From: Caecitellus pseudoparvulus
Lineage: Eukaryota > Protista > Bigyra: Bicosoecida
Reading direction: 5' to 3'
DNA: 64,000 bases
Assembly: GCA_965644315.1 (NCBI GenBank)
Contig: CBFFRQ010000068.1
Coordinates: 372,001 to 436,000, forward strand
Shown here: positions 23,574 to 59,552 of the stretch, piece after piece
How positions within the stretch are numbered: position 1 is the first letter of the stretch
Layout: the number at the start of each line of letters is the position of its first letter
Notes under the pieces: generated by a model
Seen by the model: only the letters and a program-made list of their open reading frames with translations
The model's database searches: none
Told to the model about the DNA's origin: nothing
Translations under genes and position numbers: made by a program

Positions 23574-26500
23574 TCACGAATTGAGCGAGCGGGCGCTGTC
23601 GCGTTGGGCTGGCCCAGACACCTTGCGCGCACTCCTGGCCTGCACGGGGCGGAGGGAGGACGGCACCTTGGAGCTGCGGCGCTCCGCCTTGACGACGCCG
23701 TACAGGCTGCGCGCAGTGGGCGTGAGGTGCAGGCCAGGCTGCACTGGGTTGCGGGCGAGGTGGGGCAGGGCGCTTGGGCGGCGAGTGGGCCCACCCGGCT
23801 GCGCGCCACCTGCGCGCTTGGCGGCACCTCGGTGGCGCACCGTCACGTCCCTGCGCATGATGAGCCAGAACATGACGCCTAGCATGAACAGCAGCGCCAG
23901 GCTACCGGCGAACACCGTGAGGGCCAGCGCATCGCGAGCCTGGGGGGAGGGCGCCCCGGGCACCCCCTCCTGCACTGCCCAGGAGATGTAGTTCAGGACG
24001 GCGGCGGCGGCGGCGAGGAGGAGGGAGGCGGGTTTGACGGCGTTCTTGTACGCTTCGTAGGGCAGGTAGGGCTGCGTGGCCAGGAGGCAGGCTGCCTGGG
24101 CCAGGAGCAGGGCGAGCGTGAGTGCCAGGCGCCAGGCGGCATCCCCCGTGTTCGTGGGTCGATCCCAGAACACCAACATGACGGCCAGCCCGGCCATGAC
24201 TGCCCACTCCAGGTGCCTGAAGAAGTACCGGGTGGGGCGGAAGTCAGTGGCGGTGAAGGGAGTCAGGCTGTGTAGCTGGGCCAAGAGAGGGTGTCGGTCC
24301 ACGTGATTGTACAGGGCAGCGTGAGCTGGGGTGGGGGCAGCAGCGCAGCACGCTCTGGAGCAGCGCGACTGGGAGGGGGTGCGGAGGGGGGTGTCGGGGG
24401 GGCTGTCTGGGGGGGTTGGCGTCCCCCCCGGCAGCCAGGCCATGGGGCCAAGCAGGAACACAGTGCAGGTGCGCCGAGAACGACAGGGGTGGGCCCATGC
24501 GAGGCAGGACGAGGGAGTGGTGGGCCCACCCCCCCGCCCCTCCGCCGCCCCCACTGCCTGGCGCAGAGCCGTGAACCGGACCCCGTCCGCCTTGCTCAGG
24601 ACATGGGCGGCGCGGCGGCGGACCCAGAGGAAGGTGTGCAAGGGGTACCCCACCACCACCACCACCAGGCCCACAGCCGCAAGGATGGCGGCTGGCAAGT
24701 GTGGTCCTTCAAAGCAGACGAAGGAGGGGTTGGGCACCCACCGGGAGGGGGGTGAGGGGGGGGGTGCATCACCCCCCTCCTCACCCGCCCCAGCATCCCC
24801 CCCCTCGTACCAAGATGCAAACGCCCGCGCCGCAGAGGAGTCCAGCGCCTGCCCTGCCATGGAGTCGGAGCAGTGCAGCAGGGTAAGTGCGGAGTTGGCA
24901 GTCATGATGTACAGCACAGACAGTGCTGTGAACAAGCCCCGGCGCAGCCAGGGCTTGCCCAGCGCCCACGCCATGCGCAGGCAGTGTGCGTGGAAGCCAC
25001 ACCAGCGGGGGCAGCCGGGGGAGGGAGTGGGGGCAGGCGGCGGTGTGGGCCCACCCCCCGCACGGGACAGCATGGGGTTGGTATGCACCAGCTCTGGCAC
25101 GGCGACGTTGGGCTTGGCAAGGGGGGGTGGACCCCCCCTCCCACACAGCCCCTCTCCAACCCTGTGGCACAGGGGGGGGCAGGCAGGGTGGCACCGTCGG
25201 GGGGTGGGCCCATCCCCCGTCCCTCGCGGGGTCCGCCCTGGACACGCTGGCAGCAGTGCCGACGCCAGCACCAGCACCAGCGCCGACGCCAGCACCAGTG
25301 TCTCGTTCAGGAAGGGTGTGTCTGAGAAGCAGGCGGGGGGGATGGCGCCGCTGGTGTCCAGCTGCAGCACACTGAGGGCAGTGTACATGGTGCGCAGGTA
25401 CGGCGGCAGGCCGGGGCTGGCGGCTTTGCCCACCTGCACTACGGACTGCAACATGATGACCACCCACAGCACGAACACCCAGGCACGCCGAACACCCTCC
25501 GCCAGGGAGATGGGCTTCTCCCCTGCAGCCCTGGCTCGCCACAGGGCGAAGGCCACGAGGCCCGCGACGAGGCCGAACACACCCAGAACACACCCAAGCA
25601 CGATGGCAAGCGGCACGAGCAGCGCAGATGCACGATCTCCACTCGATCCCTGGTCGGCACAGGCAACACAGGCACCGTCCAGAGCTGGGTAGAAGCCCCG
25701 GGCACAAGCACCACATGCAGGGACGGTGGGATCATACCCCTCCCCGCACTGCGCTGATGCGGTGGTGATGTTCCAACCCTGGCAGCGGTCTGTCGCTGGG
25801 GCCGCACAACGCACCACTCCAGCCGGACTGGCCTCCCCGTCCGCCCAGTAGCCAGGCAGAGGCCACCGGCGATATCCCCCCGGGCACACGGCACCTTCAC
25901 CGCACGGCTCACAGTCATCCGCCGCGCCGAAAGCGCAGGTGGCAGCGGTGGGGGCGCGCTGACACAGGGGGGATGCCGGGTCTGGGTACCCGCTGCACGC
26001 CTGGGATACATGGGGTCCACGTGCGTATGCGCTGAAGGGGGGCCCGGGCACATCCCAGAAGGAGGAGGGGGGGAGGGAGGGGGAGTCGGACCCCCCCCCC
26101 ACCTGCGCACCCACCACTGTGCCCAGCACTGCCAGCCCGGCAGCCGGCAGGGAGCGGGCCAGGTCCACCTGGGCAGGTAGAGCGGATGAGGTCATGGTGT
26201 CCTGCCCCCCCCCACACTGCCCCGGACACCGAGTCGCAGAGGACACCGTGTCCCCCTCCCGCCACAGGACAGCCCCATCCGGCCCCGGCCCCGCCACGGC
26301 AGCTTGCGCCAGGGCCCTGTACGCCGCTGAGTCGGACCACATCCAGGCAGCCGCGGTGGGGTCCGCCACCGCCTCTGCCCATGCCGCTGCCACCGAGTCA
26401 GCCCAGGCGGCAGGCAGGAGGAAGGGGTTGGCGATGGACAGGGGGCGATAGGCTGACGCACCTTGGGCGCAGGCACGGCCCCCCTCCCCACACAGGTCGG

Positions 26501-29213
26501 CGAACGGGGGAGCTTGCACCATGACCGCCGTGCCAGTGGTGGCGATGGCCAGCACGGAACACGGAACATCGCCCAGCCACACCTGCACGCCAGGTGCGAA
26601 GGCCGAGGGCGTGTGAGCGTTCTGCAGCGGGCTGGTGGGCCCACCTGCCCGACGTGCCAGCCACGTCAGGGTGGCCGGGTCCCCCGCAGCTGCGCGAGGG
26701 AAGAGGATGAGGGGGGGCCCGCCCCCTGCCAGAACAATGAGGCGCTGACCGCCCCGAACACTCAAGCGCATGGGGGGATCTGTTCCGGGTCGTGGGGACC
26801 GTGCGGTGCTCCACAGGGCAGGTGGGGGCAGGGGGGCGTCACCGTGCACCCCCCCCTCCCCCGTGGACAGCAGGGGCACCTCCTCTCCCCAGCTGGACCT
26901 CCACTCAGTCCGGGTGCTGTTGCCGGGCCCAGGCACGACTTGCGGCTGCAGGACGTCTCCCACCCCTGGCAGCACTGCCGGGACCATGGTCGCGTACAAG
27001 GTGGCAGCGCCGAGGGATGGGCCCACCCTCCCCGCCGCTTGCATCTGCGCCAGGAGTGCCCCAGGCTCAGCGCTCTCCCAGCCGCGGGGAGGGGGGTCTG
27101 CCGTGCGCAGTCGGAAGCCCTCGCACATCACGCGCACATCAACTGCACCCCAGACGGCCAGCGTGACGTCTCCGCCCTCGGGCGTCGACCCCGTGATGGG
27201 CCCATCGCCCCCCACATACCACGCGTGGGGGGCGTTCTCAGGAGCTGGGTGGGCGACGTGCAGTGCGTGGGCAAGGCGCCCCTGCCCCAGCCAGCCCACC
27301 GCCCCTTCCAGCGTCCCTGCCCAGGCAGGCGCCAAGCTGCACACAGCCAGCACTGGCAGGGACGGGTCACTCGACAGTGCCCTGGCGTCCACTTGCATCT
27401 GCACCGTTACACCGTCTGGCGCGTTCACGCGGCTCAGCAGCAGGGCGGAGTGTGTGACGCTTGGGCGGCGCCTGCGCAGCACCCGCAGCGGGGCGCCATG
27501 AGCCGCGGCCAGGGCGGGGTTCGGACCCCCCAGAAAGTCGTCCACCCCCCCTGGCGCCAGGGCCGCAGTCTGCAGCAACTGGCGAGCCAGCACCAGCGGC
27601 CCTGCTGGCGGGATGGCCACGCCTGCATCTGTCAAGACACGCTCAGCATCTTCAGCTGACAATGCATCTGCCATGGCTTGCATCGCAGCAGGGGCCAGGC
27701 GCGTTCCAGGTGCAACCCAGCCTGCTTGAGCGAGGTAGGTCAGCGCAGGTGACGTGGCGTTGATGCCGCCTCCGCGCCCTGGCGGAAACAGCTCTGAAGA
27801 GGGAGGTGGGAGGATCCAGCCCCCCCCCGGTGGCTGCAGAGGGGGGGGGCTTGCGCCGCCTGGCGACAGGCACAGCAAGCACTCTGCGGAGGAGCTCGAT
27901 GGAGTGACAGAGGGTGTGGGGGATGCCGTGTTGGATGGTGAGCTCGTCACACTGGCCGTATTGGAGGGCGTCACGCTGGCCGTATTGGAGGGCGTCACGC
28001 TGGCTGTGTTGGATGGCGTCACACTTGCTGTGTTGGAGGGCGTCACACTCGCTGTGTTGGAGGGCGTCACACTTGCGGTGTTGGAGGGCGTCACACTTGC
28101 GGTGTTGGAGGGTGTGACACTTGCTGTGTTGGAGGGAGTCACACTTGCGGTGTTGGAGGGTGTGACACTTGCTGTGTTGGAGGGAGTGTAAGTGGGTGTG
28201 CCCGTTGGAGTTTGTGTGGGGGTGCGAGTGGGTGTGCGTGTCACAGGAGGTGTGGTGCTGGGCGTCACTGCCGCCGATGGCGAAGGCAGGGCGGTGGGCT
28301 GCACACACACCGCCACCCGCTTGAAGTTGGCAAAGCCAGCAAACCTGCAGTCACACCCCTCTTGGGCATCATTCCACTCGGTGGTGACTCCCCCCTGCGA
28401 ATACCCCAGCCACTTCTCGGTGTTGGTGCAGCCCGTTGTTGTGCCCTGTCGGCATGGTGTTGGGATTCCGTTGTCAGGCTGCCCACTTCCCCAGTTCTCA
28501 TACCGCCCCTCCGTGTTCCCCGGCATGGGCACCGGTGAGTTGTCCTGCACATACTTCCAAACCCCACCGATTCTCCGCGCGCCCAGCCACATGCCAGGCA
28601 GGCCCTGAATGCCCTTGGCTTGCATGTACTGTACGAACGCAGTGTCATCCTCTGCCGATGTGGGCTTTGGCATTTGCCCGCCCCATGCCGCACAGCTCGC
28701 TGATGCCGAGTACCAGCCGACGGGGTTGTCCCCTTTCTTGAAGCACAGGTGTCCCCGCGTTTCCCAACCAAGAGGGCAAGGGGTGCTGATCAGGCGCCGC
28801 CGGACACCTGTCAGGTGCTTCGGAAGCTGGGATGCTACAGCCCCAGCGTGTGGGGTCGGCATGGCGCCAGGCGGGGGCCCTGCTCCAGGCATCTCACTCA
28901 CGCGACGCAACGCAATGCCGCTGGGTGCTGGCGAAGCAGCTGCGTCGCCGGGAAAGTGCCGCTTTGCCGACGCCAGCGCCCCGGTGAGCTGGGCGGGGTG
29001 CGAAATCTTCAAGTCATCCACCTGCTTTATCCACGTGAACCCTGCTGGGCTGCTGCGTCGCCCTGGCACGGCAACACCGTTGAATAGGGCAACGGGATCG
29101 GCTTCCGCAGCTGCCTCATGCGAACTGCACCCGACAGCCGCAGGGCGGGCGGCAAGCGCCACCAGGGCCAGAAACAGCACCGCCCAGGTCCCGAGACCCC
29201 TTGTAAATGTCAT
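23574..29213 (-). CDS. Lectin-tipped multi-pass membrane receptor (signal peptide, 1 CTLD, Thr/Ser stalk, IPT-like and Cys-rich regions, ~9 TM); 1879 aa
   Basis: Signal peptide. CTLD CPLGW..LCF..WYSASASC..WLGA..WGSGQPDN..WND..VCV. (TPSNTASV)10 stalk. CAFGAADDC..CPGGYRRWPLPGYW..C Cys-rich block. Multiple hydrophobic helices. Clear paralog of the gene at 46517-59552. Confidence 0.85.
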   Translation of the reverse strand: MTFTRGLGTWAVLFLALVALAARPAAVGCSSHEAAAEADPVALFNGVAVPGRRSSPAGFTWIKQVDDLKISHPAQLTGALASAKRHFPGDAAASPAPSGIALRRVSEMPGAGPPPGAMPTPHAGAVASQLPKHLTGVRRRLISTPCPLGWETRGHLCFKKGDNPVGWYSASASCAAWGGQMPKPTSAEDDTAFVQYMQAKGIQGLPGMWLGARRIGGVWKYVQDNSPVPMPGNTEGRYENWGSGQPDNGIPTPCRQGTTTGCTNTEKWLGYSQGGVTTEWNDAQEGCDCRFAGFANFKRVAVCVQPTALPSPSAAVTPSTTPPVTRTPTRTPTQTPTGTPTYTPSNTASVTPSNTASVTPSNTASVTPSNTASVTPSNTASVTPSNTASVTPSNTASVTPSNTASVTPSNTASVTPSNTASVTSSPSNTASPTPSVTPSSSSAECLLCLSPGGASPPPLQPPGGGWILPPPSSELFPPGRGGGINATSPALTYLAQAGWVAPGTRLAPAAMQAMADALSAEDAERVLTDAGVAIPPAGPLVLARQLLQTAALAPGGVDDFLGGPNPALAAAHGAPLRVLRRRRPSVTHSALLLSRVNAPDGVTVQMQVDARALSSDPSLPVLAVCSLAPAWAGTLEGAVGWLGQGRLAHALHVAHPAPENAPHAWYVGGDGPITGSTPEGGDVTLAVWGAVDVRVMCEGFRLRTADPPPRGWESAEPGALLAQMQAAGRVGPSLGAATLYATMVPAVLPGVGDVLQPQVVPGPGNSTRTEWRSSWGEEVPLLSTGEGGVHGDAPLPPPALWSTARSPRPGTDPPMRLSVRGGQRLIVLAGGGPPLILFPRAAAGDPATLTWLARRAGGPTSPLQNAHTPSAFAPGVQVWLGDVPCSVLAIATTGTAVMVQAPPFADLCGEGGRACAQGASAYRPLSIANPFLLPAAWADSVAAAWAEAVADPTAAAWMWSDSAAYRALAQAAVAGPGPDGAVLWREGDTVSSATRCPGQCGGGQDTMTSSALPAQVDLARSLPAAGLAVLGTVVGAQVGGGSDSPSLPPSSFWDVPGPPFSAYARGPHVSQACSGYPDPASPLCQRAPTAATCAFGAADDCEPCGEGAVCPGGYRRWPLPGYWADGEASPAGVVRCAAPATDRCQGWNITTASAQCGEGYDPTVPACGACARGFYPALDGACVACADQGSSGDRASALLVPLAIVLGCVLGVFGLVAGLVAFALWRARAAGEKPISLAEGVRRAWVFVLWVVIMLQSVVQVGKAASPGLPPYLRTMYTALSVLQLDTSGAIPPACFSDTPFLNETLVLASALVLVLASALLPACPGRTPRGTGDGPTPRRCHPACPPLCHRVGEGLCGRGGPPPLAKPNVAVPELVHTNPMLSRAGGGPTPPPAPTPSPGCPRWCGFHAHCLRMAWALGKPWLRRGLFTALSVLYIMTANSALTLLHCSDSMAGQALDSSAARAFASWYEGGDAGAGEEGGDAPPPSPPSRWVPNPSFVCFEGPHLPAAILAAVGLVVVVVGYPLHTFLWVRRRAAHVLSKADGVRFTALRQAVGAAEGRGGGPTTPSSCLAWAHPCRSRRTCTVFLLGPMAWLPGGTPTPPDSPPDTPLRTPSQSRCSRACCAAAPTPAHAALYNHVDRHPLLAQLHSLTPFTATDFRPTRYFFRHLEWAVMAGLAVMLVFWDRPTNTGDAAWRLALTLALLLAQAACLLATQPYLPYEAYKNAVKPASLLLAAAAAVLNYISWAVQEGVPGAPSPQARDALALTVFAGSLALLFMLGVMFWLIMRRDVTVRHRGAAKRAGGAQPGGPTRRPSALPHLARNPVQPGLHLTPTARSLYGVVKAERRSSKVPSSLRPVQARSARKVSGPAQRDSARSLNS
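27946..28185. repeat. 24-bp coding tandem repeat x10 (TPSNTASV on the minus strand)
   Basis: Units of the type GTCACACTTGCGGTGTTGGAGGGC start every 24 nt from 27946. Variation is at synonymous positions. Confidence 0.95.
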
Positions 29214-30634: not shown

Positions 30635-30771
30635 CAGTGTTGCGCGCAGGGGCAGGCGTGAATGCAGACTGAATTGAGAACAGCCGGCACTCCAAAGAGG
30701 CTGCAGCCGCCGGCGGCGGAGTGGACGCGCCACCCGTGGCGAGCCACTGTGTGTGAGTCGAGCAGGGCACT

Positions 30772-32485: not shown

Positions 32486-32587
32486 GTGGGGCTGCGAGCG
32501 CCTCAACCCTTGACTTGTGCCATGTAATGTATTCTCATTTCCACCCTCGGCAGGCTGGGCGAGTGGGTTGCAGCTGGCCGGGGAGCA

Positions 32588-32597
32588 GCGGAAATTG
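32588..32597. promoter_or_regulatory. Candidate start-proximal motif GCGGAAATTG (representative copy)
   Basis: Exact copies in either orientation at 15949, 16665, 31386, 32588, 35683, 60837 and 62731. Six of the seven lie within ~320 bp of a start codon. Confidence 0.55.
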
Positions 32598-34162: not shown

Positions 34163-37100
34163 ATGGCCAGTCGGCGAGCGGTGTCTGGGCGGGGGGGGGC
34201 TGCCCCCGCCCCCGCCACCTTCGCAGCCTACCCCTCCGTCGTGCACTTTGGGGGGTACAAGGTGGGCCAGCCCTGCACCGCCACCGTGCGCATCGTGAAC
34301 GTGTCGGGCAGCAGTGCCAAGTGTGACATTCTCGGCCCAGCTGCTGACGAAGGGTTCTCCATGCAGCATGCGCTGCGAGTGCATGACCGCCTGCCTCCGG
34401 GAATCGGTGCGTGCTGGTGGGAGGTGAGGCGATTTCCGCACAGCAGCAACTGGCACTGTCCTTCTGCATGCAGGGGAGAGCGTCACTGTGACCTTCACGG
34501 GGAGGGAATGGAAGTACCATTATGACTTCATTCGGGTGGTGTCTGACGGCCAGGAGCTGCGTGTGGGGCTGCATGCGTACCCCGTGCGTGCTCGACTGTC
34601 CGGGCGACTTGACATCGCCCTCTGACACGCCTGCCGCCCCCTCCGCGCCCTTCCCCCTGGCAGGTCATGCACAAGTTCTCCATTCCCAAGCAGCTGACAT
34701 TCCCTGACGTGGAGCTGGGGCAGCCTGTCACTAAGGTGCTGCCCCTCTCCTCCGCTGTGCCAGTGGAGTTCGAGTTCACCCTGGCCCCTGTCGAGACACA
34801 CCCGTCCATCCAGCTCGCACCGCTGTCAGGGGTCATCCCTGGCAATGGCAGCGTGCAGGTGAAGGCGACATTCACACCCCTGGACTTCTCCACGGTGTTT
34901 GCGGAGTATGACGTGTCCTGTTCGCAGTTTGACTTCACGCCGTTTCGCATGCGCATCGTCGGCAACGCCAAGCCCGGCGCAACCCGCGCACGCCTGCTGG
35001 CGGAGGCGGTGGAAGGTGGCGAGGCCCCTCCATCCACGCAGGCACTGGACATTGCCGGTACGTATGCTTCCACACGGCGTGGACCAGGCGCAGGCGCTGT
35101 GGCTGACCCTGGTGATGCGCTGCGTGGCCCTGCGTTGGCAGCTTCGAAACGCCGCGTTGCACTGCGTGAGGCGCGGGCACGCGCTGAGAGCAAGGCTGCC
35201 GAAGCGCGAGGGGAGGGGGACTTGTACCAAGCCATGTCTGCTCGTGGCGAGGTTGAGGGGGAGGGGGAAGTGGTGGTGGACGGTCTGCGCCTGCCTCGGC
35301 GGTTGGCGGGTCAAGCTGCCGTGAACGATGTGCTCATGCAGGCGCCCGGCAAGCTGCGCGCCAAGGACGTGGGGCTGGCTGTCGCATCCCACAGGGCCAT
35401 GGTGGCCTCCCAGACGCGTGCCATGGGGCAGGGTGCAGAGCCTGCCGCGGGCACGCGCAGCGCGCGGGACCTGCGGCACGCCCAGCAAGCTGCCGGGCCA
35501 GGGTTGAGCTTGCAGGAAATCTTGCTGGCTGAGAAGGCGGCTTCGTGGCTGGTGCGGGCCATCGCGTGGGCGGGGGGCCTGGGTTTCACGCAGGCCTCGC
35601 GAGAGGCAGATGCTGAAGCCCAGGCGGGCTTTGCCGCCCTGCGCAGCAAGCGCGAGGCGCTGGAGGGCCTCTTTGCCAAGATGCGGAAATTGCGCAGCTC
35701 GCAGCCGGACAGCGGCGCCGCGCCCCTCTCCCCTCGCGCCACAGCTGCTTCCCTCGCATCCCTGCAGAGCCAAGCTGTGCGTGCAGAGGCAGAGCTGGTG
35801 GAGGCACAGGCCCTCGTCGCCGCGAAACGCGACGCCGCGCGGGCTGCAGCTCGAGGTGACTTTTCGCTGGACCTGGCAGCCCTGGCGGCCAGTGTGGAGG
35901 ACCTCCCTGCGACGACGGAGCACCCAGTGGATGTGGCGCTGGAGCGCCTGTCCCGTGCGGGCGGGTGGACCCAGCAACACACCTCCGCGTACAGCCTGCC
36001 CGGCGCCACGTCGCCCTACGCTGCGCAGGTGGCGGCGGCCCAGGGCCGGGGTGGGGGGGATGCCCCCGCCGACGCCACCCCTGCCCTAGCCCCTGCCCGG
36101 CACTCGCGCGCCGGCCTGTCCCCCCTTGGCGCCGACATCCGTTCCCTGCGGGCCATGCTGTTCGCATCCAAGGTGCGCGGCATCCAGGATGCGGAGGCAG
36201 CGCGCCGCACCACTTCGCAGGGGGAGTGGGGGGGCGAGCCTGGCCTCACCCCCCAGGACCTGCGAGACATTAAGGCGGCACGGCAGGAGCTGGCGCGGCT
36301 GGAGTGCATCTTCGCATCGCGCCTGGGACAGCGCCGACGGCACATGCAGCTGCACGGCGAGGGGGGGGGGACACGGGAGGGGGGCTGGACCCCCCCTCCC
36401 CCACCCCCACCGGGGGGCCCCCTCACACCCGCTGCCATCGCCAGTGTCGCGGCGGCACCGCTGCCGCCGGGGCGCACGGTGGTGCTGCAGCCGGAACACG
36501 GAACACTGCGCGGCCTGGAGCACGCAGAGGCTGCCGCAGCAGCCGAGGCGGCGGGGGAGGATGAGGTGGCGGCAGAGGTGGAGGTGGCGGCGCGGCGGGC
36601 GGCGCTGCTGACTCTGCGCGATCTCTTCACGACGCGCGTGATCCGAGATCGCGCGGACCGGCGCCTGGGCGCCCTGCGGCGGCGCCTCGCGCACGTCTGG
36701 CGCCTGGACAGCAGCGACGTGGCGGGGCGGCGGGCGGCGGTGGCGGACGTGGTGCAGCGCGATGCGCAGCTGGCTGCAGCGGGGCGGGATGCGGCCGATG
36801 CGTGGCTGAGCGTGGCGCCAGGGTGCCTAGCCCCCGACGCGCTGGTGCCGCAGGAGGGGGGGGAGGTGGCGGGGGCGCTGGTCCTGGGCGGAACACTTGT
36901 TCCCAGCATCACTGGTTGCGGCCTGCACCCGACCCCCTCGGGGGATGTGGACGCCATGGCAGCCGCGGCGGCAGCGGCGCCGGGGGGGCACGCCGCCCTC
37001 GTGGGGGGCGTGCAAGCCGCCGCCCTGGCCGGGGTGGCCGATGTGCAGGAGGTGGTGTCTGCAGCGCCCCTGCCGGACATGGGCCCACTGGCCGCTGCTG

Positions 37101-46516: not shown

Positions 46517-49500
46517 TCACCACATCTTTCTCTTCGCATACGCGCGCTCACGCGCCGCATCGCGCAAGATCTGCTGCCGCTCCCGCCCGCTCATCACGCT
46601 CAGCTGCGCCGCAGCTGTCGCGTATGCTGCGCGCCACTTCTCCGCGCCCTGCCCGATCGCCAGCGGCGTCACGCTTGCACGCTCACGGCGCACCATCTGG
46701 GCACCCACCACGCCTGGGTTCAAAGCACCCGGCCCGCTCTCACCGTCACCGCCCAGGTCCACACTTCCCTTGCCCGCCACCTCCAGCCGTGACGTGGGCC
46801 CATCCTTCTCACCCCCACCCGACCCAGCCTGCTTCCCCCGCCGACCAGCCATACGCTTGCCACCCTTCATCATGCTCTGCGCCACCACAGACATGCGAGC
46901 ACGCCGCACGTGCCCGGCGCCATCACGCGAGGCAGCCGACGAGGCGGGACCACCCCCACTGCCCCCACTGCCCTTCCCACCAGCTGCACCCAGCTTGTCC
47001 TGCAGAGTGCGGAACACCATGGGGTTGCCCCCTGCCTGGTACCGCACATGGCGCTCCTCAGGCAGGTCCACCACGGTGCGCTGCAGACGCCGCTTGCGAC
47101 GGGCAAAGGCCTTGGCCTCCGCCTCCGCACCCATGATCAACACACGCCAGAAGGACGTCAACAACGTCAAGAACAGGCCCATGGACATGATGAACACCAG
47201 CACTGCCAGATTCCGCCCGCCATTCCGCCCCAATGGGAACACACTCAGCTCCCCCTCCATGAACGTCACGTAGTTCATGAGCCCCGCCGTCACGGCCAGC
47301 GTCAGGGAGTACACCTTCACGTTCTCCTTCCACTTCTCGTTGTCCAGGAAGGGCGACTCGTACACCATGCTCACCACGACGCTGCTCACGACGAGGAAGG
47401 TGATGAAGAACTTCAACAACGCCACGTTCTGCGACTCTGGCGCCGCGAAGAACACCACCGTCACTGACAGCGCCAGCAGCACCAGCATGTTCAAGTGCCG
47501 GTAGTAGAAGTACACCGCCTTGTAGTCGTTGTCCAGGAAGTGCGCCAGGGTGTTGTTCTGCACCAGGGCAGGCGCCGTGTTGATCATGTGCAGCAGCTCA
47601 GCCTCCTCAGGCGACTTGGCGTCATTGCGGTGGCGCCACTTCTTCCCCAGCGCACGCTGGGCCTTGGCCACCTTCTGGAACCACTTGCTGCAGCACAGGG
47701 CACAGATGCAGCAGCAGAAGGCGTAGAAGCAGCAGCTGCACAGGCACCCGCAGCACGCACACCACCCACCACCAGCCCCCGCATCTTCGTCGTCGGCATC
47801 ATCCCCCTTCACCTGCCCATGCACCACACGCGCCTTCAGCGTGGCGCCGTACCCACCACGCTTGGCACTGGCTGTCGGTGTCGCGGCAGGAGCGCCCACA
47901 TCTCCACCTCGCATGCCATGCTTCAACATGGCCAGGGGGTTCGCCGTGCCCACACTGGGGCTGGCCTTGCTGCGCGCACCCCCCCCACGACGCCCCACAC
48001 TCATCTCGCTGTACGCTGCAGGGTCACTCAACATCGGGTGGAACGCTGTGCGCGCCACGTACAGCCCATGCACATCCTTCCGCAGCCACTCCGCGTCGTC
48101 TTGACCCGTTGCCAGACCCGCCCGCAGCGCACGAGCCCGCTGCCGCACGGCATCCATCGCCCCGAAGGACGACGACATGACTGTGCTGCGGTACGCCGCC
48201 ACCTGCTCCAGCTCCTCGGGGTCGCGAATGCTGAAGGCATCTGCACTCTGCAGCTGCACAGCCTTCTCAGATGGCATCAGCAAGTGCTGCGCCGCAGACA
48301 GGCCGGCGTACGCACCACCGGGCAGCGCCGCACGTGACCCCAGCCGGCCTGCCCGCATCAGCAGCTCGGCATCTGCCTTGTACCCTGGCCGCGCCCTCAC
48401 GAACATGGGGTTCAGTGTGCCGCCCTTCGCGGTGCTGGCGCCCCCCACGCCAGCACTGCGCAGGGCAGGTGCCGCGGCGGTCTTGGCCGCTGCCCCTCGC
48501 GTGGGCATCAACGAAAACCGCTTCTTGCGCACCCGACCACCCGCACCAGCCGCGACAGCCGCCGCCTCGGCAGCTGCCACAGCCTTCGCCTTCACCACAG
48601 GACTCACCACTGAGGCGGGCAAGGACGCCAGCCGAGCAGCGGCACCACGTGACATCACGCCGCCCTGCCCGAAGTACAGCTCACCCAGGTCCACACGCCG
48701 GGGGCCCTCCTTCCCGTCGCCCCCGCCCCCATGCACCTTCAGGTGCTGTGCCAGCAGGCTCTCCTCGTCGCTGTCAAAGCCACCCACATCACCCATCGCC
48801 ACAGCTGCCGCCTCGACAGGGTCCACCACCCGCTTGCCCACCGCCATGGACTGCCGGCGCACCTTCTTCGCAATGGCCTTGCTCTTCACCTTGGCGGCGC
48901 TGCCACTGGCCTTCACAGCTGCCCGGGCAGCCTTCACCGCGTTCACCTTGGCTGTCGCACGGGCATACGCCTGGGCAGCCTGGGACTTCAACATCACCTT
49001 GTGGATCTTGCGACGCACCCACAAGTACGTCAGGACGGGGTACCCCACCACATACAGCAGCAACAGGGCTACCGCCATGGCGCCAGGCACCACGTGGTCC
49101 TCTGCAAAGCACTCGTAGAAGGGGTTGCTCACCAACAGCCACTTCTCCACCACCTCACCCCCATCATCCACCAGCTCACGGCTGCAGTACAACAGCCCCA
49201 GCACCGTGTTGCACACAATCGCATACATCAGTGTCATCAACGTGAACGTCAGTCGCCGCAGCAGGGGCTTCACCTTCCCCCACACACCCACAGCCGCCCG
49301 GGGGTCCACACCCTCCGCCTCACCCTTCCCCTTGCCCCCCGCCTTCTCCGCCTTCAGCGCAGTCATCACCACCGTCAGCACCAACAACCCCAACGCGATG
49401 CCCATCGTCGTCTTCTCGGCCGTGAACGGCGCCTGGTCCAGACAGGCAGGCGGCACCAGACCAGAGCTGTCAAACTGCAGCACGTTCAGCTGTGTGTACA

Positions 49501-52500
49501 GGGACTGCAAGTACGGCGGCAGGCCAGGGCTGGCTGCCTTGCCCACCTGCACAATCACCTGCAGCATGCTCACCGTCCACACGACAAACTGCGCCGCTCG
49601 CTTCATGCCCCCTGCGAAAGAGCCGCCCTTGATGGCCGTCACGATGCGGATGGCCGTCGCCATCACCAGGAACAACCCGAAGGCTGCCCCTGCAAAGGCC
49701 AGCGGCGGCAGCACCAGCTCCAGCCCGCCCTGGCTTTCGGGACATGGCGTGCAAGCCCCAGTGTCCTTCGGGTAGAAGCCCTTGCTGCACAGCGCACACA
49801 GACGGCCCTCATACCCCACACCACATGCCGCTGTGGACGTCGTGTAGTTCCACCCTGTGCACCGCTCCAGCGACGGAGGCGCACACGCGCTGGCCGTCAC
49901 ACGGGAGTCCTCAGACGCCACCCAGTACCCAGGCTTGGGCCACCGACGGTACCCTCCCGGACACAGCTCACCCACCCCACACCGCACACAGTCATCCCCT
50001 GCGCCAAATGCACAGTTGCGATGCCCAGGGTCGGTGGCATCACGGCACACTGGCCCAGGCGGCGTGTACCCGACACACGACGCCGTCACGAATGTCCCGT
50101 ACCCCAGCAGTGAGTGTGCCTGCTCTCCGGGCGCCGATGCACCTGTCTGTAGGCGGCGCGAGGCGGAAGCAGCTCCAGAGGGCAGGGATGCACGAGCTGC
50201 ACTGCCAGCGCCTGGGCACGCCAGGGGGCACGCCGACACGCCCCCCAGCACGACACCAGCCCCTGCACCAGCCACACGCAGTGTCCCGGCACTCCGAGCA
50301 GATGCCCACGCCGCCTCGCCCGCCACGAACAGCGTGTGCCCCGCCTCCACCCAGTCCTCCACGGCAGTCCCTGCCGCCCGGGCACGCCATGTCGAGCTCA
50401 CGTGCTCCACCCACTCCGCCGGCACCATGGGCGGGTTGGCCACCCACAGCGCGCGGTAGGCACGTTGGCCTCGACATGCCTCCTCAGAGGGGCACATGCT
50501 GCTGTACGATGGCATCCTCAGCCGCAGCACCAGACCGTCACTGGACACGGCAGACACGTTCAGCTGCATGTCCCCCAGCCACACCTGTGCACCTGGCACA
50601 AACGCAAACGGCTGCACGGGCAGGCCCGCACTGGAGGCAGGCGGTGTGAAACCTGGCACTGCAGTCGTCGGCACACACCGCACACGGTGCTTGCAGTCCG
50701 CGACGATCACGATGTCCTGCAGGCCGCCCAGCGTCACGACGAAGTAGTCCCCGCCGTCCCGCGACTCCACACCCGTGAACACGGTGAACGGCGAGTCACC
50801 CTCCACACCACTGCCGTCCCCCGCCCTGCCTTCAAAGGGCGCCGCAGATGCCGCTGCCAGGATGCGGCTGTAGTTCGTGGACAGCGACGCCAGGCCTCGC
50901 CCCGGCACGCCCGTGTCACCCCCACCACTGCCCCAGCTGGACATCCACCCTGTGCCCCCTGGCAGCGCAATCAACACATCCCCCACAAACGGGTACACTG
51001 TCGGCACGCTGGCAAACGGCACGCTGATGGGCGGCAGGCCTGCGTACACCTGCAGACCAGACGACACGCCCTGCAGCTGGGACGTGATCACACACGTCAC
51101 TGCAAAGGCCCGCGACCACGTCTCGGGCGCCAGGGAGCTCACGCCCCGCAGCGACAGCGGAGCAGCCCGCAACCACTGCCGCATGCCGCCTGGGCCCACA
51201 CTGGCGTCCAGGGAGAACTGCTCAGGCGTCACACGCACAGCGCCCGGTACACTCCCGCTGCACTGCACCACCACCACTTCGTTCGGGCCTGGCTGGTTTG
51301 GCATGACGACCTCGAACCCCAGGCCCAGCGGTGTCGAGCCTGCAGACAGCAACAAGGGCGTCTCCACAGACGCAGAGGTGGGCTGACCAGGCACACGCAA
51401 GTCGCGCAACCACGCGGCCCTGCCCAGACGCGGATCAATGGAGCTCGGTGACACATCCACCACCCCGCCTGCGCCGGCAATGTCACTGCCCTGGTGATCG
51501 AAGGCTTCCAGCGGGGACGCGCCGCTCACAGCCGGCCGGGCATACGCACCAGACGTGTTGAACACATCCACACTCTCCACAGCGCGGGCGTCCACTGTCA
51601 GGCTGAACAAGTCGCACTTGCTGCTCAACAGCCGCACAGGGCTGAACGGCGCCGACGCAGCGCTCTGGCCCAGGGAGTTCCCTGAACGGGTGTAGAACCG
51701 CAACAGCCGGTCCTCAGGCAAACCTTGCACGTTCATGGCACGCACGATGCTGCCGCTGCGCTCCACTGACGCGCCCACCGTGCCGCCCGTCGCACTCTCG
51801 AATGCAGCACGGCTGCCAGCCAACGCCACCAGCGTGCCATTCTGCACCAGTGCAGCTTGGCTGGGTGCGCCACTACCCTGCCATGTCCACACACTGTAGT
51901 ACTGCATGCCGTTGGAGTGAGCAGTCGCTATGGCAGACCACTGCGACACCAGCTCACTTCGCGCGCCGAGCGACCCTGCAGACAGGGAGCCCGCGAGAGG
52001 CACGGGCGCAGGCGCCGTCACACTGCCATCCGTGGACGCACTGGAAGGCCCCATCCACGCCAGCCCACTGCCCACCGCCGTCACAGTGGCCCACGTCAGA
52101 GCAGGCAGCGGCACACGTGGCGCAGAGTCAGCCCACGACACCACAGCATTCAGTTGGCATGGGTCCACAGCAGTCACTGCCCCAGCACTTGTCGGCCGCG
52201 CATCCACACACTGCACAGCAGCAGGGAACGCCCCCGCCGCGATGTCGCTGTCAGACGCCGTCCACAGCACAGTCCCGTCGGCCAAGTGAAACGCCCACTC
52301 ACTCGTGCCACTGCACCGAGCCCGTGTGAAGCCCCATGGCAGCAGGGGCGCCGTGCACCGTGCGACACACTCCGTGTCCAGACCCGTGTACCGGCCTGTC
52401 CCGTTCACCGCCACGCCCAGACGCTCACAGGTCCAGGAGCCCCCACCTGCCACACGTGGCAGAGGGCGACAGTGGGGGGCGCTGGGCGACGGCGTCTGGG

Positions 52501-55500
52501 AGGAAGTGGGCGTCACAGAGGACGTTGCAGTCACGCTGGGCGTCGACGTCATCGTGTTGGATGGTGTGCTCGTGACGCTGGCTGTGTTGGAGGGCGTCAC
52601 ACTGGCAGTGTTGGACGGTGTCACGCTGGCTGTGTTGGAAGGCGTCACACTGGCTGTGTTGGAAGGCGTCACACTGGCCGTGTTGGAAGGCGTCACGCTG
52701 GCCGTGTTGGAGGGCGTCCCCGTCATCGTCTGGCTTGGCGTGCCGGTCATGGTCACGCTGGCGGTCTGAGACGCCGTCACGCTTGCCGTCTGCGATGCCG
52801 TCACGCTGGGCGTGCCTGTCATCGTCTGTGTCGCCGTCACACTGGCAGTTTGGGAGGCAGTCACACTGGCCGTCTGCGATGCCGTCACGCTGGGCGTGCC
52901 TGTCATGGTCTGCGATGCAGTGACACTGGGTGTGCCCGTCATGGTTTGTGTAGCAGTGACACTGGGCGTGCCTGTCGTGGTTTGGGAGGGCGTCACACTG
53001 GCTGTCGCGCTGGGAGTGCCAGTGGATGTGGGCGACGGTGTCTGCGTTGGTGTTGCTGATGCCGACGCCCCACACGTTGCAGCGGGAAACGGCGTGGTGG
53101 TAGTGCTGGGAGCAGCCGGGACCAGGTCATCACCAATTACGGACATGGAGAGCATTGCGTGCTTCCCTGGGTCGAAGTGGCGCAGCAGATATGGCATGCC
53201 ACACAATGGTGCCCGCGACGTCCCGCAACTACGGTCATTCCACCGACCGTTTGAGGAGATGATCTCCCCACAATCCTCAGGGTTCGGAGTGTTGTTTGGT
53301 TCTCCAGTGTTCCAATCGCAGTATGTGCCGGTCCCTGTCTGGCAGCTGGAGGGTTCGTCGGAGATCAGCCGGCCGTCAGTCCACAGCCAGTCGTCTCCCC
53401 CATTGCCTTCCTGTCGCTTCAGGCCAAAGAAAGAGTTTGGAAAGCTGCCGCCCGCCACGCCGTCCAATCGGTTCTTGATGGCAAAGTGGTCCAAGAAAGT
53501 GGAAAGCGACGCCAGGTCCGCGCCATGCTTTTCGCAGTCGGTTTGGCCCGCATCATGTGTGCCTGTACCAGTCCCAGCAGGGAACCCCACACATCGCCCG
53601 CCGTGTGGCGCCATGTCAGGTGGGCAGGCTGGAATGATGGGCACTTCAATTGCGCCATTCGCTGAAACTGTACAATCAATGGCAGTGAAAGATCCAGAAT
53701 CATCAAATTTTGCACACGCTGTGCTTCCACTGTGCGTGCCTAGGCTCGCGCCAAACAAGTCGCTGCTGCCGTCTGCCCAACGAAAGTCATCTTCTGCTGA
53801 ACCCTCAAATCCCTCGCGGAAGAACGCCACGGCCTCTCCACCACCGGTCACGACGTTTTCATCAACATATACCATCTCGTCCGCGTTGTTGAAGGTCACA
53901 AGGTCGCCTCCAAGGCCTGCCGCGAGCCTTCGTCTATTTGCGACGTTGAAGCTGCCCGCCGTGGAGCGACCGTACGCACTTGAACCCCACACGTGTGTCA
54001 AGCTTGCAGGCTTTTCCAAATATTGCTGAAAGCCTGGTAACTTGCAGATTGCGAAGTCCAGCATCGTCCCTGGTGATGCACGCTGCAGGGCGCCAGTGCC
54101 ATCAAACAGCTTCACGGCCGTGCCAGAGCCGGAGAAGTCAAGCTTGCCTCGATACATGGGCGCACCGTCCGCATTCTTCGGCATGGCGTTGGAGGGCCAC
54201 TGAACGCCCACCCACGCATCAGCTGTAATCGTATCGAGCATCCACTCCAGCTCCCGGGCCGTTGACACGGATGCAAGCATTCCACCCTCATCACGGCAAG
54301 TTTCCCTGGCATTCGTAGCTGTCACAGTCCCAGGCGCGCTGATCGCCCGCAGGCAGCTGTACCCAACTTGAGAGTATGTCGCAGGGCATGCCACTGAATC
54401 TCCGAGCCGCATCTCACACATGAATGGTGACTTTGAGTTCGCTGGCATGTGCTGGTACAACCCTGCGCTGTTAACTGCCAGCCCCAAGCCTGCTCCAACG
54501 TTCGCGACTGACCCGCCTTGCCATCGACTTGATGCACCGTTGCTAGCAGTCGTCAAAAAGTTGCTACCTGGCGGAGCAGAGAACTCCCACGCGCCACCAC
54601 CGCCAGATTCAGCTCCAATTGCAATGGTTGCCACAGCCACTGCCACGTCACGGATCCGCGGCACATCCACCTGGAGCAGGTCGCTGCCGCCCCAAGCTTG
54701 ACAAACAGCACGTGCGGTCCCCCATGGAAGACTTGCAGGCGCGCGGGCGCCAGCGTAGCCTAGCTGCCCGTCAGTGCGCACGCTGGACTCCCAAACACAC
54801 CTGTCCTGCAGGGGCAGCCAGCCCCTGGGACATGCGAAGAACTCGCCTCCAACCCCTGGGCGCTCACACACCACATCTGAGGTTGCAGATGAAGGGATTA
54901 CTCCTAAGTCGGCGCCGTGGCTGCCAATCGGGTTGTGGGTCATCCGCAGGTAAAATCCGGCTGAATGGGGTGGAATGGCTCCACCAACCCAGTCCGAGGC
55001 GGATGCTCTGAAGGAAACCGGGTCAACGGGTGCAAAGTCATCTACAGCGTCGTTGACGAGAACACCCAGAGAAGCACTAGAATGTGGGGACGCAGGCGCG
55101 GTCATGACATCCTTAAGCCAGTCCAGCTGGCCCTGGGACCTCAAGCTGGCAGGTGCTGCCCCCAACTCAATGCAGCGTGCAGTCGCCTGGGCTCTGTTCA
55201 AAGACTCTCCAACAGTTCGACGGTAGCAGAAGCCGCCAAACCAAGACCAGCCTGAAGGGCACCCCCTGGACGCGCCGGGCACTTCACACACCGCCGGAAA
55301 GGTCGTGCAGCAGGGCACATCTTGCAAGGTGCCATCAAAACGCGCCACGACACAGTGCGAATTTCCCGCTGCGGGGTGGCCCAACAGCCATGGGACTTCG
55401 TGGGGGAATGAACCGCCGTCAGAGGCTTGCCAAGTGGCATCGTCGCCTGCAGGCTGCGATGTCAGCCCGGTCCAGATGCGGCCCGTGGTCCCGTTCAGCA

Positions 55501-58500
55501 CTGTGTCCAGCAGGTACGAGACCTGAGCCACTGATCGTGGCACTGCAAGGTGCCCCATCATGCTTGCACAGGCTTCATTCGCCTCGGTCCATGTGCTTCC
55601 GGTTGGAAGTGGAACGTACCCCGTGTCGCCTTGGGTGTGCAGGTGCCGCTTGCAGAGTGGCCTGACCTCCTCAACACACCAAGCAGGAGCAATGCTGACT
55701 TGTCCGTTCACCTTGGTCAGCTTGGCGCAGTCACTCTGCAGGGTGTTGCCTCCGGAGAGACGGTGTCCGTACTGCATCTGCCGTCCATCGCTCCAGATGA
55801 ATGTGCCCTCAACATCTTCATCTGACAGCCCCACCCAAGCAGCCGTGTTGTCCAAGCCTCCAAGGAGCGCACTTGACACATCGTCCAGCTCTTGCTCAGA
55901 GCCCAGACGAGCGAGGAAGCCGCCAGAGGCTGCACACGTCTCTTCCCCGTCAGCTTGTGTTACAGGGGTGGTTTCAAGCTTGTAGCAGGCTCGGTGCGTG
56001 GGCAGCTCAGTCCAGCCTCCGGGACACAGCCCTGTTGGAGCAGGGGGCTGTGCCTCAGGCGGTAAGCAAATGTCAGCCGGAGCTGACTCCTTGGGCGATC
56101 CAGGAAAGGGAAAGTCCACCAAGCGGCCGGAATAGAACTCGGCCTTGGGAATGGGCACTTCCATTTCACACAGGAAGTCGCGTGAGCCCGTGCATGAAGC
56201 CTGCGCCCATTCCTTGCCACTGCTAACAAAATGTACACAGTCTCCTCCCGCACCAAATTGCGGCGTGGACTGCCAGGGTGCCTGGTACTCGGATGTAGAT
56301 GCACCTGCTTCCTGCACAGAAGACCCATCTGGCCAGTAATACTGCAGGGAAAACGGCGAGAGGCGTCGAAGCCCGATCCAGTCACCGTCTGCCAGCAGCC
56401 CATGCAGAGTCAAGTCCTCGATCTTGTTGGTGATGGAGACAAGCTTGGCACCCTCGAACTCGGCATCACACGCAGCCGCGGCAGTAGAGTAGTCCATGGA
56501 GGTGGCTACCCGTTTGTAGCACATGTCCCGGGCCTCCGTCCCACGCCAGTTGCCGATGGTCTTGGAGTACACCCACCCAGGAGGACACGGAGGCACGAGA
56601 GGACGCTTGCAAGCTGCGGCGAGACCCCAACTGCAATAGTAGTCATGAATACCAGGCGTTGCAGATGCAGTGAGAGCTCCACAGTCTTCACCGTCGTTTC
56701 CAGGCTGGTCTAGTGACCAGGGCTGCTGCAGGGACGCGGATTCGCTGCCGTCGATCCAGTAAAACGCGTCTGTTTCAGTCGGTTCGTCCCCAAAAAATGG
56801 AGCATGTCCAATGCTGACCAGGCCAGTAAAGTGCACCCAACCTGGAGACTGGAGTTGGACCTCGTTGGCGACCTCCAGCCACTCCGGCCAAGTCCTGATT
56901 GAGACAAGCTCTCCGCCGCTTGGCCTCCGTATACAATAGTCGATAGATTCAGAGAAGTTGTGTCCGCTATCGGACTGGTAGCAGTGCCCCATCCACTCAT
57001 GCTCACCTCCGTCGCAAGACAAGGCAGTCCACGGCAAGTACTCGCACAATGCCCAAGAAGCTTGGGTCGTGTTACAGTTTGCAGCATGAATAGTTCGGCC
57101 ACCACTGGCCTTGAAACCACACTGTTCAAGCACTGGTCCCGGATGGGGCGAGCCACCCCCAGATCCCCAAGGCATGCTCGTGGAGTTCAAGGGGTTCCCG
57201 TTTGTCATGCGCCACTCATTCCCGGTGCTTTTGTACGTCCCGTATCCAACCCAAGTGTCTGAGCTGCTCTCCTTCAATACAGACATCTCAGTTGCAAACG
57301 CCCACCAGTTCGCCAGGTCAGTCCATGCTCCAATGATCCCCCCGACCTGGGCGCGGCAAGCGGCTTCTGCTGCGTGCCAGTCAGAGGCAGTCCCAAGGTC
57401 AATCCGCCCGTAGCACTTGCCCTTGTAGAATTTGAAGCCACTTCCTACAGGACAAGACACCTCAGGGTACACCGCGCAAAGGTAGGGAAGGGTCTCATTC
57501 GCAGGCACGACTTCGAACTGGCCGGTCGCAGCGCTGATGGCCAAGCTCTCCTCCACCGCCAACGAGAATGCTGGTGGGCACCCTGCTTGCCCGTCAATCG
57601 TATTCCAGAACATGCTCGTGCAGACATCTTCCTGTCCAAACATCGTCCATCCTGGCGTTCCGTCTCCGGCACTTTTAGTGGTCCCAGCCCACATTCGTCC
57701 TGGCCCGGAGCTGCCCGCCTGTGCTAAAGTAGCGGCAACCAAACCTGACGTGTCACTGTGCACTTGAACAAGGTCGTTGCCTCCTTGTGCAATGCACAGG
57801 CGACGAGCATTGTCGTGTGTTGTCGCCGTGTTGAAAGCAGAATCCCACAGAGAGGACCGCACACACCCTCCAAGCAGTGGCAGCCAGCCGGACGGGCAAG
57901 CCTGCACAGAGCTCTCTCCGTAGGCTCCCCTCTCACAAACGCAGCGAGCGGAGCTTGACATAGAGTGTGTCGAGTACGTAACAGTGGATCCTACCATGGT
58001 CACAACGGCAGTTGGGCCACTGCCCAGGGAGATAAAGGGCGACATGTCCGCACCAGTTTGCAGGTTCAACCACCCGACAGCCCCGCTGGAGTCTGGCTCA
58101 CGTAAGGCGCCAACCCAGGCGACACCGCCCTGCATGAAGAAGTCCTCGTCAATGCTGCTGCCGCTGGTGTCTGGAGCCCACATAGCAGCACCATGCTTGG
58201 CGCAAGCCTGCACTCCTTGCATGAAGGTGCCAGAAGACATGACTTGGCGCACACAGGTGCGAGTCGAAGCCCGCATGACCCAGCCAAGAGGGCAGGCAGC
58301 AGTGTCTCGGAGCAAAATAGGCTTCTGGCAAACAGCATGCTTCGCTTGGCAGCACGACGTGTCTTGCCATCCATTTGTTTGGTGTGCTGCAACACACTGG
58401 GTGTCACCAGGCAGCGGTGCTGCCGCCAAGCTGTGCCCTGAGTCCCATGGCAGCCCAGTCTCAGCAACAAAGTCCTCTCCGGCCCCCTGGCTGGGGGAAT

Positions 58501-59552
58501 GAAAAGAGGAGACACCGACCCAGACCTCTGTCACGCCCCCTGGAAGCAAGGTAAACAGATCCTCTTGTCCCACAATGCTCTCGTCTGGCACTGCCAGCAC
58601 CATGCCCAGGCTCTCACAGCCATCCTGAGCCTCCTTCCACGTGCCGGGATGCGGCAAGGCCTGCAGGATGTCCCCCACGGCGACGCTGCTTGGCATCTCA
58701 CATAGCGGCCTGTACAGCTGGTCACACACTGTGGAGAAGCGGGGGAGGCTCTGCTGCGACGAGGAGCGCAGCACAATCACGAGTGACTCACAGTGATCCC
58801 ACATTGCTCCGTCGCTGCGCAAGCGAATGCAGTTTTCTGCGGCACCTCCAGGACCAAGAATCATGTCGGGGTCAGACAGAACAGCACCCGGGATCGGCGT
58901 CCCGTCACCCCACCGGTGGACGTTATCTGCGACAGGACACAATGTGCGGAGGTTGCGGAACGGTGCCTAGATGCTGAATCACGCAGCGCGCAGGAAACGA
59001 CACACCTGCATCTAAAAAGGCTGAAGTCCAGTACTGTTCTCCTGGGGCCACACCGGCAGCGGTCTGGATGTCTGACACCTCGTTGAAGTTTGAGATGGAA
59101 AAGAGCCCAGCCATTGGGTGCTGTGATCTGCAGTACTCCTCCGCCGCTGCGTGCTCCATACTAGTGCTCCCTGCATGGAAGCAGCGGCCCGCCGCATTCC
59201 CAGCACCAGCACTGAATGGGGAAGGGCACCCTGTAATCGGAAGGACGCCAGCTAGTTTCCGACTGCGCCGCTCTACTGCTGTGCCTGGGGGGCAAAGGGA
59301 AGGCCGTGGGTGACGTGATGCAGCACTTTGGCGTGGCGACGCAAGCGCGCCAGAAGACGCCCTCGCAAACGGAACTCGAAAGAAACCCATAATACCAAAC
59401 TCCGCACCAGCCTGTGACCATTGGCCCTGGTCAAGTCACTCACTCTGTGCTTGGCTTGCGTCTGCTCGTGCAGGTCGCGCTGCGACAAGCTGGCAATCGA
59501 CGAGCACAAGAAGCAGCCCCAGCAGCACAGCGAGCTCAAGAAGGTTACTCAT
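46517..59552 (-). CDS. Giant multi-lectin membrane receptor (signal peptide, 14 CTLDs, Thr-rich stalk, Sushi-like, FN3-like, IPT-like, Cys-rich, ~9 TM); ~4244 aa
   Basis: Exons 59552-59444 (signal peptide MSNLLELAVLLGLLLVLV), 59284-59006, 58926-58792 and 58728-46517. Fourteen C-x-GW..C..A...C..W(V/I)G..C..C repeats. Same CAFGAGDDC/CPGGYRRWPKPGYW/QVGKAASPGLPPYL blocks as the gene at 23574-29213. Confidence 0.88.
52572..53070. repeat. Coding Thr/Ser stalk repeats: (TPSNTASV)6 at 52572-52715 followed by TASQTASV/TASQTMTGTPSV units
   Basis: 24- and 36-bp degenerate tandem units, visible in both DNA and translation. Confidence 0.9.

Follow-up and report, generated by a model that had tools for sequence, protein, structure and literature searches.

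Candidate lectin-headed surface receptors with a shared nine-helix base and varied heads in Caecitellus pseudoparvulus

Introduction

The molecular recognition of particles, prey, viruses, and mates by free-living protists is largely unknown. Reports of feeding receptors specific for mannose exist for phagotrophic protists (PMC3768488), and mannose-type 'feeding receptors' have been inferred physiologically and rarely tied to genes. A 64-kb stretch of Caecitellus pseudoparvulus DNA, hereafter the window (C68:372001-436000 of a 30.6-Mb, 215-contig eukaryotic assembly; guanine plus cytosine content ~60-77%), raises the question of whether genes for a recognition system of this kind can be recognized. 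It encodes two large proteins, paralog 1 and the far larger paralog 2 (the giant), in which C-type lectin-like domains (CTLDs) precede a multi-pass membrane region. The original prediction, made from the sequence of the window, held that both belong to a modular family with interchangeable lectin heads, that the heads have opposite sugar specificities, that the membrane base resembles a domain related to fungal Flc/Pkd2 proteins, and that the proteins may be glycan-gated receptors or channels with a polycystin/REJ-like logic. Here, we describe which parts of this picture are supported by comparison of the two genes with each other, with the remainder of the genome, and with public sequence and structure databases.

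Results

Two genes with a common body

Paralogs 1 and 2 align by BLASTP at 3e-71 over 614 aa that span the ectodomain core, a Cys-rich block, and transmembrane helices (TM) 1-3, and their Ser/Thr/Pro stalks align at 8e-39. Together with hydropathy and AlphaFold2 (AF2) models, these alignments bear out the proposal that the two proteins have a common stalk, core, Cys-rich block, and membrane base of about nine helices. The predicted order from the N-terminus is a signal peptide, CTLD head, Ser/Thr/Pro stalk, IPT/TIG-like core, Cys-rich block, and nine-helix base, with large variable loops and a tail that would be cytoplasmic at the C-terminal end. Both stalks contain tandem arrays of a 24-nt TPSNTASV unit (10 copies in paralog 1; 6.2 copies in the giant, at 52571-52718) with consensus units that differ at 2 of 24 bases, and the stalk is probably O-glycosylated. 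An alignment of five paralogs contained 40 invariant columns.

Both window genes are intact and real, as indicated by their long intact frames and by the pattern of differences between paralog 1 and a related strain. Contigs of that strain (from one public run, X1) span all of paralog 1 at ~97-98% identity with zero indels; among the 40 differences listed, 31 are synonymous and 9 are nonsynonymous, and 29 fall at third codon positions. The giant comprises an open frame of 4149 codons (46517-58966, minus strand) and two predicted exons upstream that extend to an ATG at 59552. Removal of the predicted intron nearest the long frame joins both halves of the first CTLD in frame. The exons of this gene were analyzed separately rather than as one spliced sequence.

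A family in which heads and bodies have separate histories

A six-frame search of the genome with the membrane part of these proteins recovered the two window genes, two convergent copies on contig C43 (4140 and 4095 aa), single copies on C40 (3225 aa), C56 (2361 aa), and elsewhere on C68 (C68:309500-317557; 2686 aa), and two truncated copies on C98. The original prediction had called for such a collection of paralogs with their heads, and it yielded more than two copies and clear head diversity: the subfamily has at least eight members, with 14, 13, 12, 5, 5, 2, 1, and 0 CTLDs. In all copies, a Ser/Thr/Pro-rich stalk lies between the head and the conserved body. The copy at C68:309500-317557 has no CTLD; ahead of its stalk is a head of ~380 aa that had no match in Pfam or in PDB sequences. 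The two C98 members stand in tandem on a short contig (C98:1-11220), where the first is cut by the contig start and the base of the second reaches the contig end; the first has 5 CTLDs and shares ~79% identity with the C56 copy.

The window giant and the two C43 copies (C43:134981-147400, plus strand, and C43:153330-165614, minus strand, tail to tail and ~6 kb apart) form a trio of giants with bodies that share 98-100% identity from the stalk nearly to the C-terminus, including a loop of 480 aa. In contrast, the head of one C43 copy (C43b) is just 31-37% identical to the other two heads, and between the window giant and the remaining copy (C43a) the heads form a mosaic with 52-98% identity. 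Heads and bodies therefore have separate histories, either via replacement of heads or via homogenization of bodies. Collectively, these observations support the proposal that heads are exchangeable within the family.

The lectin domains

The predicted counts of 1 and 14 CTLDs were recovered with an iterated hidden Markov model (HMM) built from the giant's own domains. In the giant, 13 CTLDs lie in the long frame and the first is split by a predicted intron. Pfam Lectin_C (2.5e-75) was the sole Pfam domain found in this 4141-aa protein. The head of paralog 1 matched Lectin_C at E 4.8e-4 and 21.3 bits, which is under the cut-off of 22.6 bits, and it matched the own-family CTLD model at 1.2e-7. 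Among PDB sequences, its best match was codakine (2.6e-9), followed by DC-SIGN and L-selectin, with its QPD motif aligned to the EPN of codakine. These matches identify the one domain in the head of paralog 1 as a true CTLD.

The QPD, EPN, and both WND motifs are in frame at exactly the positions claimed for them (Table 1), and one CTLD per window gene bears the motif pair. In an alignment of all CTLDs, a full Ca2+ site 2 (EPN, Glu, and WND) was confined to the CTLD nearest the stalk in the giant and in its C43a copy.

The ectodomain core and Cys-rich block

The ectodomain core is also present in ~30 relatives. An AF2 model of the core (md7ead3a30de8) had a predicted local distance difference test (pLDDT) score of 64 overall and 85-96 in the beta-sandwich. 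In a VIA-align comparison with this model, the top list consisted almost entirely of IPT/TIG domains (Met, plexin, NFAT/NF-kB, EBF, and Bacteroides SGBP), with Z of only 5-6.3 and a root-mean-square deviation of ~2 A over 77-96 residues. The core had no Pfam TIG match. The label 'IPT-like' is thus reasonable for the modeled fold, albeit not proven.

A 103-sequence profile of the Cys-rich block and base had weak matches to Eph-receptor Cys-rich domains in the PDB (E 0.003-0.04), and Pfam returned sub-threshold matches to DUF7630, DUF7631, and ELAPOR-TNFR. Across the whole proteins and their pieces, Pfam matches comprised only Lectin_C and sub-threshold DUF7630, DUF7631, ELAPOR-TNFR, and TRP; REJ, GPS, PKD_channel, cadherin, TIG, and TRP_N were not found.

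The nine-helix base and its relation to PF06011

Hydropathy profiles of the base show 8-10 segments. The AF2 model of the Cys-rich block and base of paralog 1, built from an alignment of 103 sequences, had a pLDDT of 75 (ordered parts >90) and a predicted template modeling score of 0.77. It consists of nine long helices; the loops that follow helices 3 and 5 are disordered, as is the tail. Because the signal peptide places the N-terminus outside, the model would place the conserved Cys of the outer loops outside and the variable loops, the tail, and the C-terminus inside. The cytoplasmic loop of the giant contains a cluster of 13 Cys in ~24 residues (47690-47764, minus strand), ~80 residues before helix 6, and the other paralogs have shorter C-x-Y-x-x-C versions at the equivalent column block; the cluster could be a palmitoylation or metal site.

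The predicted relationship between the base and the Flc/Pkd2 'TRP-like' family (PF06011) was upheld as a distant one. The best direct PF06011 match in the subfamily, from the C40 paralog, reached 18.4 bits (E 0.001), under the Pfam gathering cut-off of 28.5 bits. The PF06011 model had 22 matches in other giant open reading frames (ORFs) of the genome, 7 of them above the cut-off, indicating that the family is expanded in this genome. When this 103-sequence profile of the Cys-rich block and base was compared by hhalign with nine PF06011-matching regions from the same genome (5 above the cut-off and 4 just below), the probability was 99.6% (E 1.7e-23), and it was 98.2% (E 3e-14) when the Cys-rich part was removed and only the TM region remained; a reversed-template control yielded 0.2%. 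This link is transitive, running through this genome's own members rather than through fungal sequences. The top named ESM feature cluster for the base was 'TRP C-terminal domain'. No paralog had a Pfam match to the ML-like TRP_N domain. The difference between the hhalign results and their control shows that the base is distantly homologous to PF06011, as a diverged branch of the superfamily that lies below the Pfam threshold for membership. None of the papers found to name PF06011 describes lectin-headed protist members.

Relatives of the base were sought among 1.84 billion cluster representatives, and the profile recovered 1197 at E<=1e-3 and 267 at E<=1e-30. Those looked up were all unnamed metagenome proteins, as were the few matches from a word-index protein search. 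The heads of 19 long relatives comprised PQQ/ACSF4-type propellers, Kelch, NHL, Laminin_G_3, fn3, or CTLD modules, and CTLDs were detected in just 2 of 151 relatives scanned. Two environmental relatives have CTLD heads (P0008 with 5 and P0010 with 3). A third, P0011 (1845 aa; GCA_024449685.1, JAANST011169215.1), has just upstream a 541-aa gene with a faint Lectin_C match, which is probably the split-off head of the P0011 gene. CTLD-headed members therefore exist outside this genome.

ESM Atlas entries alike in shape or features are labeled as haptophytes, green algae, cnidarians, sponges, and ciliates, a taxonomic range that is taken solely from the ESM Atlas labels. These entries carry Ephrin_rec_like, DUF7630, and LRR domains, and TIR_2 in one haptophyte cluster. 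The cnidarian clusters have LRR heads. The haptophyte cluster superposes on the model of the Cys-rich block and nine helices (TM-score 0.52) and carries Ephrin_rec_like, with TIR_2 in 18% of its members. The nine-helix module may be coupled to TIR signaling in some lineages.

Features of the two genes and their neighbors

Table 1. Positions of the parts of paralogs 1 and 2 in the window.
Feature	Position	Strand	Basis and remarks
Paralog 1, whole gene	23574-29213	-	Uninterrupted ORF, 1879 aa from ATG; intron not seen
Paralog 1, signal-peptide-like N-terminus	29130-29213	-	Hydrophobic stretch, ORF residues 69-95 (hydropathy)
Paralog 1, single CTLD	28299-28787	-	QPD 28473-28481 and WND 28368-28376, both in frame
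Paralog 1, Ser/Thr/Pro stalk	27885-28298	-	24-nt tandem array 27945-28184, 10 x TPSNTASV
Paralog 1, shared ectodomain core	26019-26984	-	IPT/TIG-like beta-sandwich ~26217-26609; BLASTP vs paralog 2 and AF2 model
Paralog 1, juxtamembrane Cys-rich block (ephrin-receptor/TNFR-like)	25644-26021	-	Weak DUF7631 match; model pLDDT >90
Paralog 1, nine-helix membrane base	23811-25643	-	Hydropathy, AF2, alignments; variable cytoplasmic loops after TM3 and TM5
Paralog 1, cytoplasmic tail	23577-23810	-	Disordered in model; model residues 745-815 pLDDT <50
Paralog 2, exon 1 (signal peptide), inferred	59444-59552	-	ATG and hydrophobic leader; GTGAGT donor at 59443
Paralog 2, exon 2 (N-terminal half of CTLD 1), inferred	59006-59284	-	Own CTLD HMM match 1e-7; AG acceptor 59285-59286 restores frame
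Paralog 2, exon 3 (remainder of gene)	46517-58926	-	Open frame, ~4135 codons
Paralog 2, introns, GT..AG	59285-59443 and 58927-59005 (79 nt)	-	Inferred from sequence alone; each restores frame
Paralog 2, CTLD array, 14 domains	53141-59225	-	EPN 53294-53302, Glu, and WND 53234-53242 in last domain only
Paralog 2, Ser/Thr/Pro stalk	52493-53095	-	Tandem arrays within 52571-53001
Paralog 2, shared ectodomain core (IPT-like)	49982-51169	-	BLASTP with paralog 1 and search of relatives
Paralog 2, Cys-rich block	49727-50113	-	Weak DUF7630 and ELAPOR TNFR-like matches; alignment with paralog 1
Paralog 2, nine-helix base	47132-49726	-	Cytoplasmic loop ~480 aa; Cys cluster ~47690-47764

Between the two paralogs lies an open frame of 2189 aa (34613-41179, plus strand) with a weak match to a CFAP65-type Ig-like domain (4.2e-05); this gene is unrelated to the receptor family. 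Near paralog 1, an open frame of 1077 aa (18320-21550, plus strand) matches the beta-domain of MscS-type mechanosensitive channels (PF00924, 2e-09).

Discussion

A proposed contact receptor

Our analysis leans, if modestly, toward the reading that both genes encode surface receptors of type-I orientation in which the lectin head reports contact or tension through the stalk and neck to the membrane base. The heads would recognize particles, prey, or partner cells by their surface glycans or by other ligands on them, and the glycosylated stalk would hold the heads far from the membrane. Occupancy of the head, or a pulling force on it, could then reach the nine-helix base by way of the core and Cys-rich block, which would form a rigid neck. 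Signaling into the cell would follow in one of two ways, with the base acting as a contact sensor akin to cysteine repeat modular proteins (CRMPs) that sets off a membrane event, or with a Ca2+ flux as proposed for fungal Pkd2/Flc. Candidate outputs are Ca2+ flux, recruitment of partners, or a trigger for exocytosis.

A number of observations weigh against this reading, and the first of these concern the heads. Thirteen of the 14 CTLDs of the giant are without a Ca2+/sugar motif, as are all CTLDs of the C43b, C40, C56, and C98 copies. The absence of these ligands makes it more likely that most of the giant's CTLDs act as spacers or protein-binding modules. The QPD site of paralog 1 is itself incomplete: there is no Glu at the 'EDC' position, which leaves the site one Ca2+ ligand short. 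In public runs, paralog 1 occurs in no RNA run, and the sole run that contains it consists of contigs of unstated kind. With respect to the base, neither window paralog had a PF06011 match that reached the Pfam cut-off, and just 1 of 47 close relatives had even a weak one. Foldseek found nothing in the PDB for the base model at E<=1e-3, and an exhaustive VIA-align search returned generic helix bundles (best Z 8.2) with no TRP or PKD chain in the top 50; searches of PDB sequences with the base profile recovered only Eph-receptor Cys-rich domains, weakly. The base is therefore without a solved structural relative, and any function as a channel or a sensor rests on analogy.

The claim of opposite sugar specificities is a weak one, with support for one of its two halves. 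The EPN site of the stalk-proximal CTLD in the giant is complete, and we infer that it is of the mannose/GlcNAc type and the only fully canonical kind of sugar site among these heads. In galactose-type CTLDs, such as ASGPR and mutants of MBP, a Trp follows QPD. The CTLD of paralog 1 has no Trp after QPD, and it has a 35-residue insert with an extra Cys pair between QPD and WND, in addition to the missing Glu. Opposite specificities would thus be a fair hypothesis for two single domains rather than a trait of the entire heads.

Alternative explanations

The alternative that survives best, although we consider it unlikely, is that the lectin-mucin ectodomain is the functional part, serving in adhesion, as a coat, or in particle capture, while the base is a mere anchor or trafficking module. 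A very long mucin stalk and as many as 14 CTLDs, mostly without sugar sites, look structural, and the cytoplasmic loops are variable and predicted to be disordered. However, the ~1,200 relatives, whose heads are unrelated, show strong conservation of the base, the Cys of its outer loops, and its polar TM residues, and this exceeds the needs of an anchor. The homogenized body, at 98-100% identity, also includes the 480-aa loop and the tail, and the related CRMPs are signaling-competent (PMC9670195).

That the nine-helix base is itself a TRP- or polycystin-like cation pore, opened when the head binds sugar, is less probable still. Polycystin-1 has an N-terminal CTLD, which favors a glycan-gated channel by analogy only. 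The distant homology to PF06011 favors it as well, in that fungal members of that family are linked to Ca2+ homeostasis (PMC8618638, PMC9600462). Nevertheless, no solved TRP, PKD, or other cation channel resembled the base in fold, we could identify no pore motif, PKD_channel, REJ, and GPS domains are missing, and PF06011 is 'TRP' in name only. An internal, Flc-like housekeeping role, in which the ectodomain would face the lumen and the protein would serve flavin or Ca2+ homeostasis or the biogenesis of the cell surface, would parallel the action of fungal Flc1-3 in the ER and Golgi (PMC9600462) but is very improbable, given that the signal peptide, lectin arrays, and mucin stalk are cell-surface hallmarks, no ML-like TRP_N was found, and the copy number and diversification of heads fit receptors that face the environment.

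A recognition repertoire and its implications

The proposed contact receptor can be extended to a more speculative model, which we regard as improbable. In this model, the subfamily would be a diversifying recognition repertoire in which gene conversion keeps the signaling bodies (stalk, core, nine-helix base, and tail) near-identical, lectin heads that are swapped and diverge provide a small set of receptors able to discriminate among prey, viruses, or partners, and the base converts occupancy of the head into a Ca2+ or exocytosis signal. If this were true, the repertoire would be the protist equivalent of innate pattern-recognition receptors, with a membrane module that is not of animal type as its foundation.

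The family provides concrete gene candidates, which comprise one canonical mannose/GlcNAc-type CTLD, one galactose-like CTLD, and a conserved body. The relatives of the base further indicate that the nine-helix module of Flc/Pkd2/CRMP-like type is a chassis on which eukaryotes widely mount very different extracellular heads, and this breadth bears on the roles of its poorly understood fungal and apicomplexan members.

Comparison with known systems

Animal C-type lectin receptors such as DC-SIGN, selectins, and the mannose receptor resemble the proteins described here in the CTLD fold and in the EPN...E...WND arrangement of one domain, and the mannose receptor additionally has multi-CTLD arrays. 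These receptors are single-pass, whereas the window paralogs have a nine-helix anchor and most of their CTLDs are without a sugar site. Polycystin-1/REJ proteins are comparable in having an N-terminal CTLD, Ig-like modules, and a multi-pass C-terminus, an analogy of design only: polycystin-1/REJ has 11 TM, whereas here nine helices were modeled and REJ, GPS/GAIN, PLAT, and PKD_channel domains are lacking. Classical TRP/polycystin-2 channels have a six-TM voltage-gated-like fold with a pore loop. With no Ion_trans domain and no matching fold in the PDB either, the base was rejected as a classical TRP/polycystin channel, and membership among polycystin/REJ proteins or TRP channels found no support.

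The PF06011 proteins of fungi (Saccharomyces cerevisiae Flc1-3, Schizosaccharomyces pombe Pkd2, Aspergillus nidulans TrpR, and Cryptococcus neoformans Flc1) have a base that likewise counts about nine helices and has its N-terminus outside, as predicted here. They are 700-1000 aa in length, without such heads and with an ML-like TRP_N domain, whereas in the window paralogs the base comes after a Cys block that resembles those of ephrin receptors and after a giant ectodomain of lectin and mucin parts.

The overall plan matches, by published descriptions, that of other protist proteins. The nonagonal cadherins of stramenopiles carry adhesion ectodomains on nine TM helices (Fletcher, van West & Gachon 2016, Gene 593:64, cited in PMC7409359). 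A large adhesion-type ectodomain on nine helices is found in both cases, although the heads here are CTLDs and the paralogs scanned had no cadherin match in Pfam. In the CRMPs of Apicomplexa and ciliates, varied ectodomains, with lectin and Kringle modules in apicomplexans, stand on Cys-rich domains and 9 TM, and these proteins are proposed to sense contact and so set off rhoptry or mucocyst exocytosis (PMC9670195, PMC9815656). Among the named matches in our protein searches and cluster look-up, none was a CRMP; the comparison by description reveals the same variable ectodomain, Cys-rich EGF-receptor-like block, 9 TM, and cytoplasmic C-terminus. CRMPs differ in that they are without CTLD arrays or a mucin stalk and form heterodimers in a rhoptry-secretion complex.

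Collectively, these comparisons go partway toward the refutation that the original prediction set for itself, a match in architecture to a family already characterized: by description, the architecture matches the plan of the CRMPs and nonagonal cadherins, a class that is already partly known, and it differs in its CTLD heads and mucin stalk. The advance is therefore incremental, in that the chassis and its modularity were already known and the lectin-headed variant is new.

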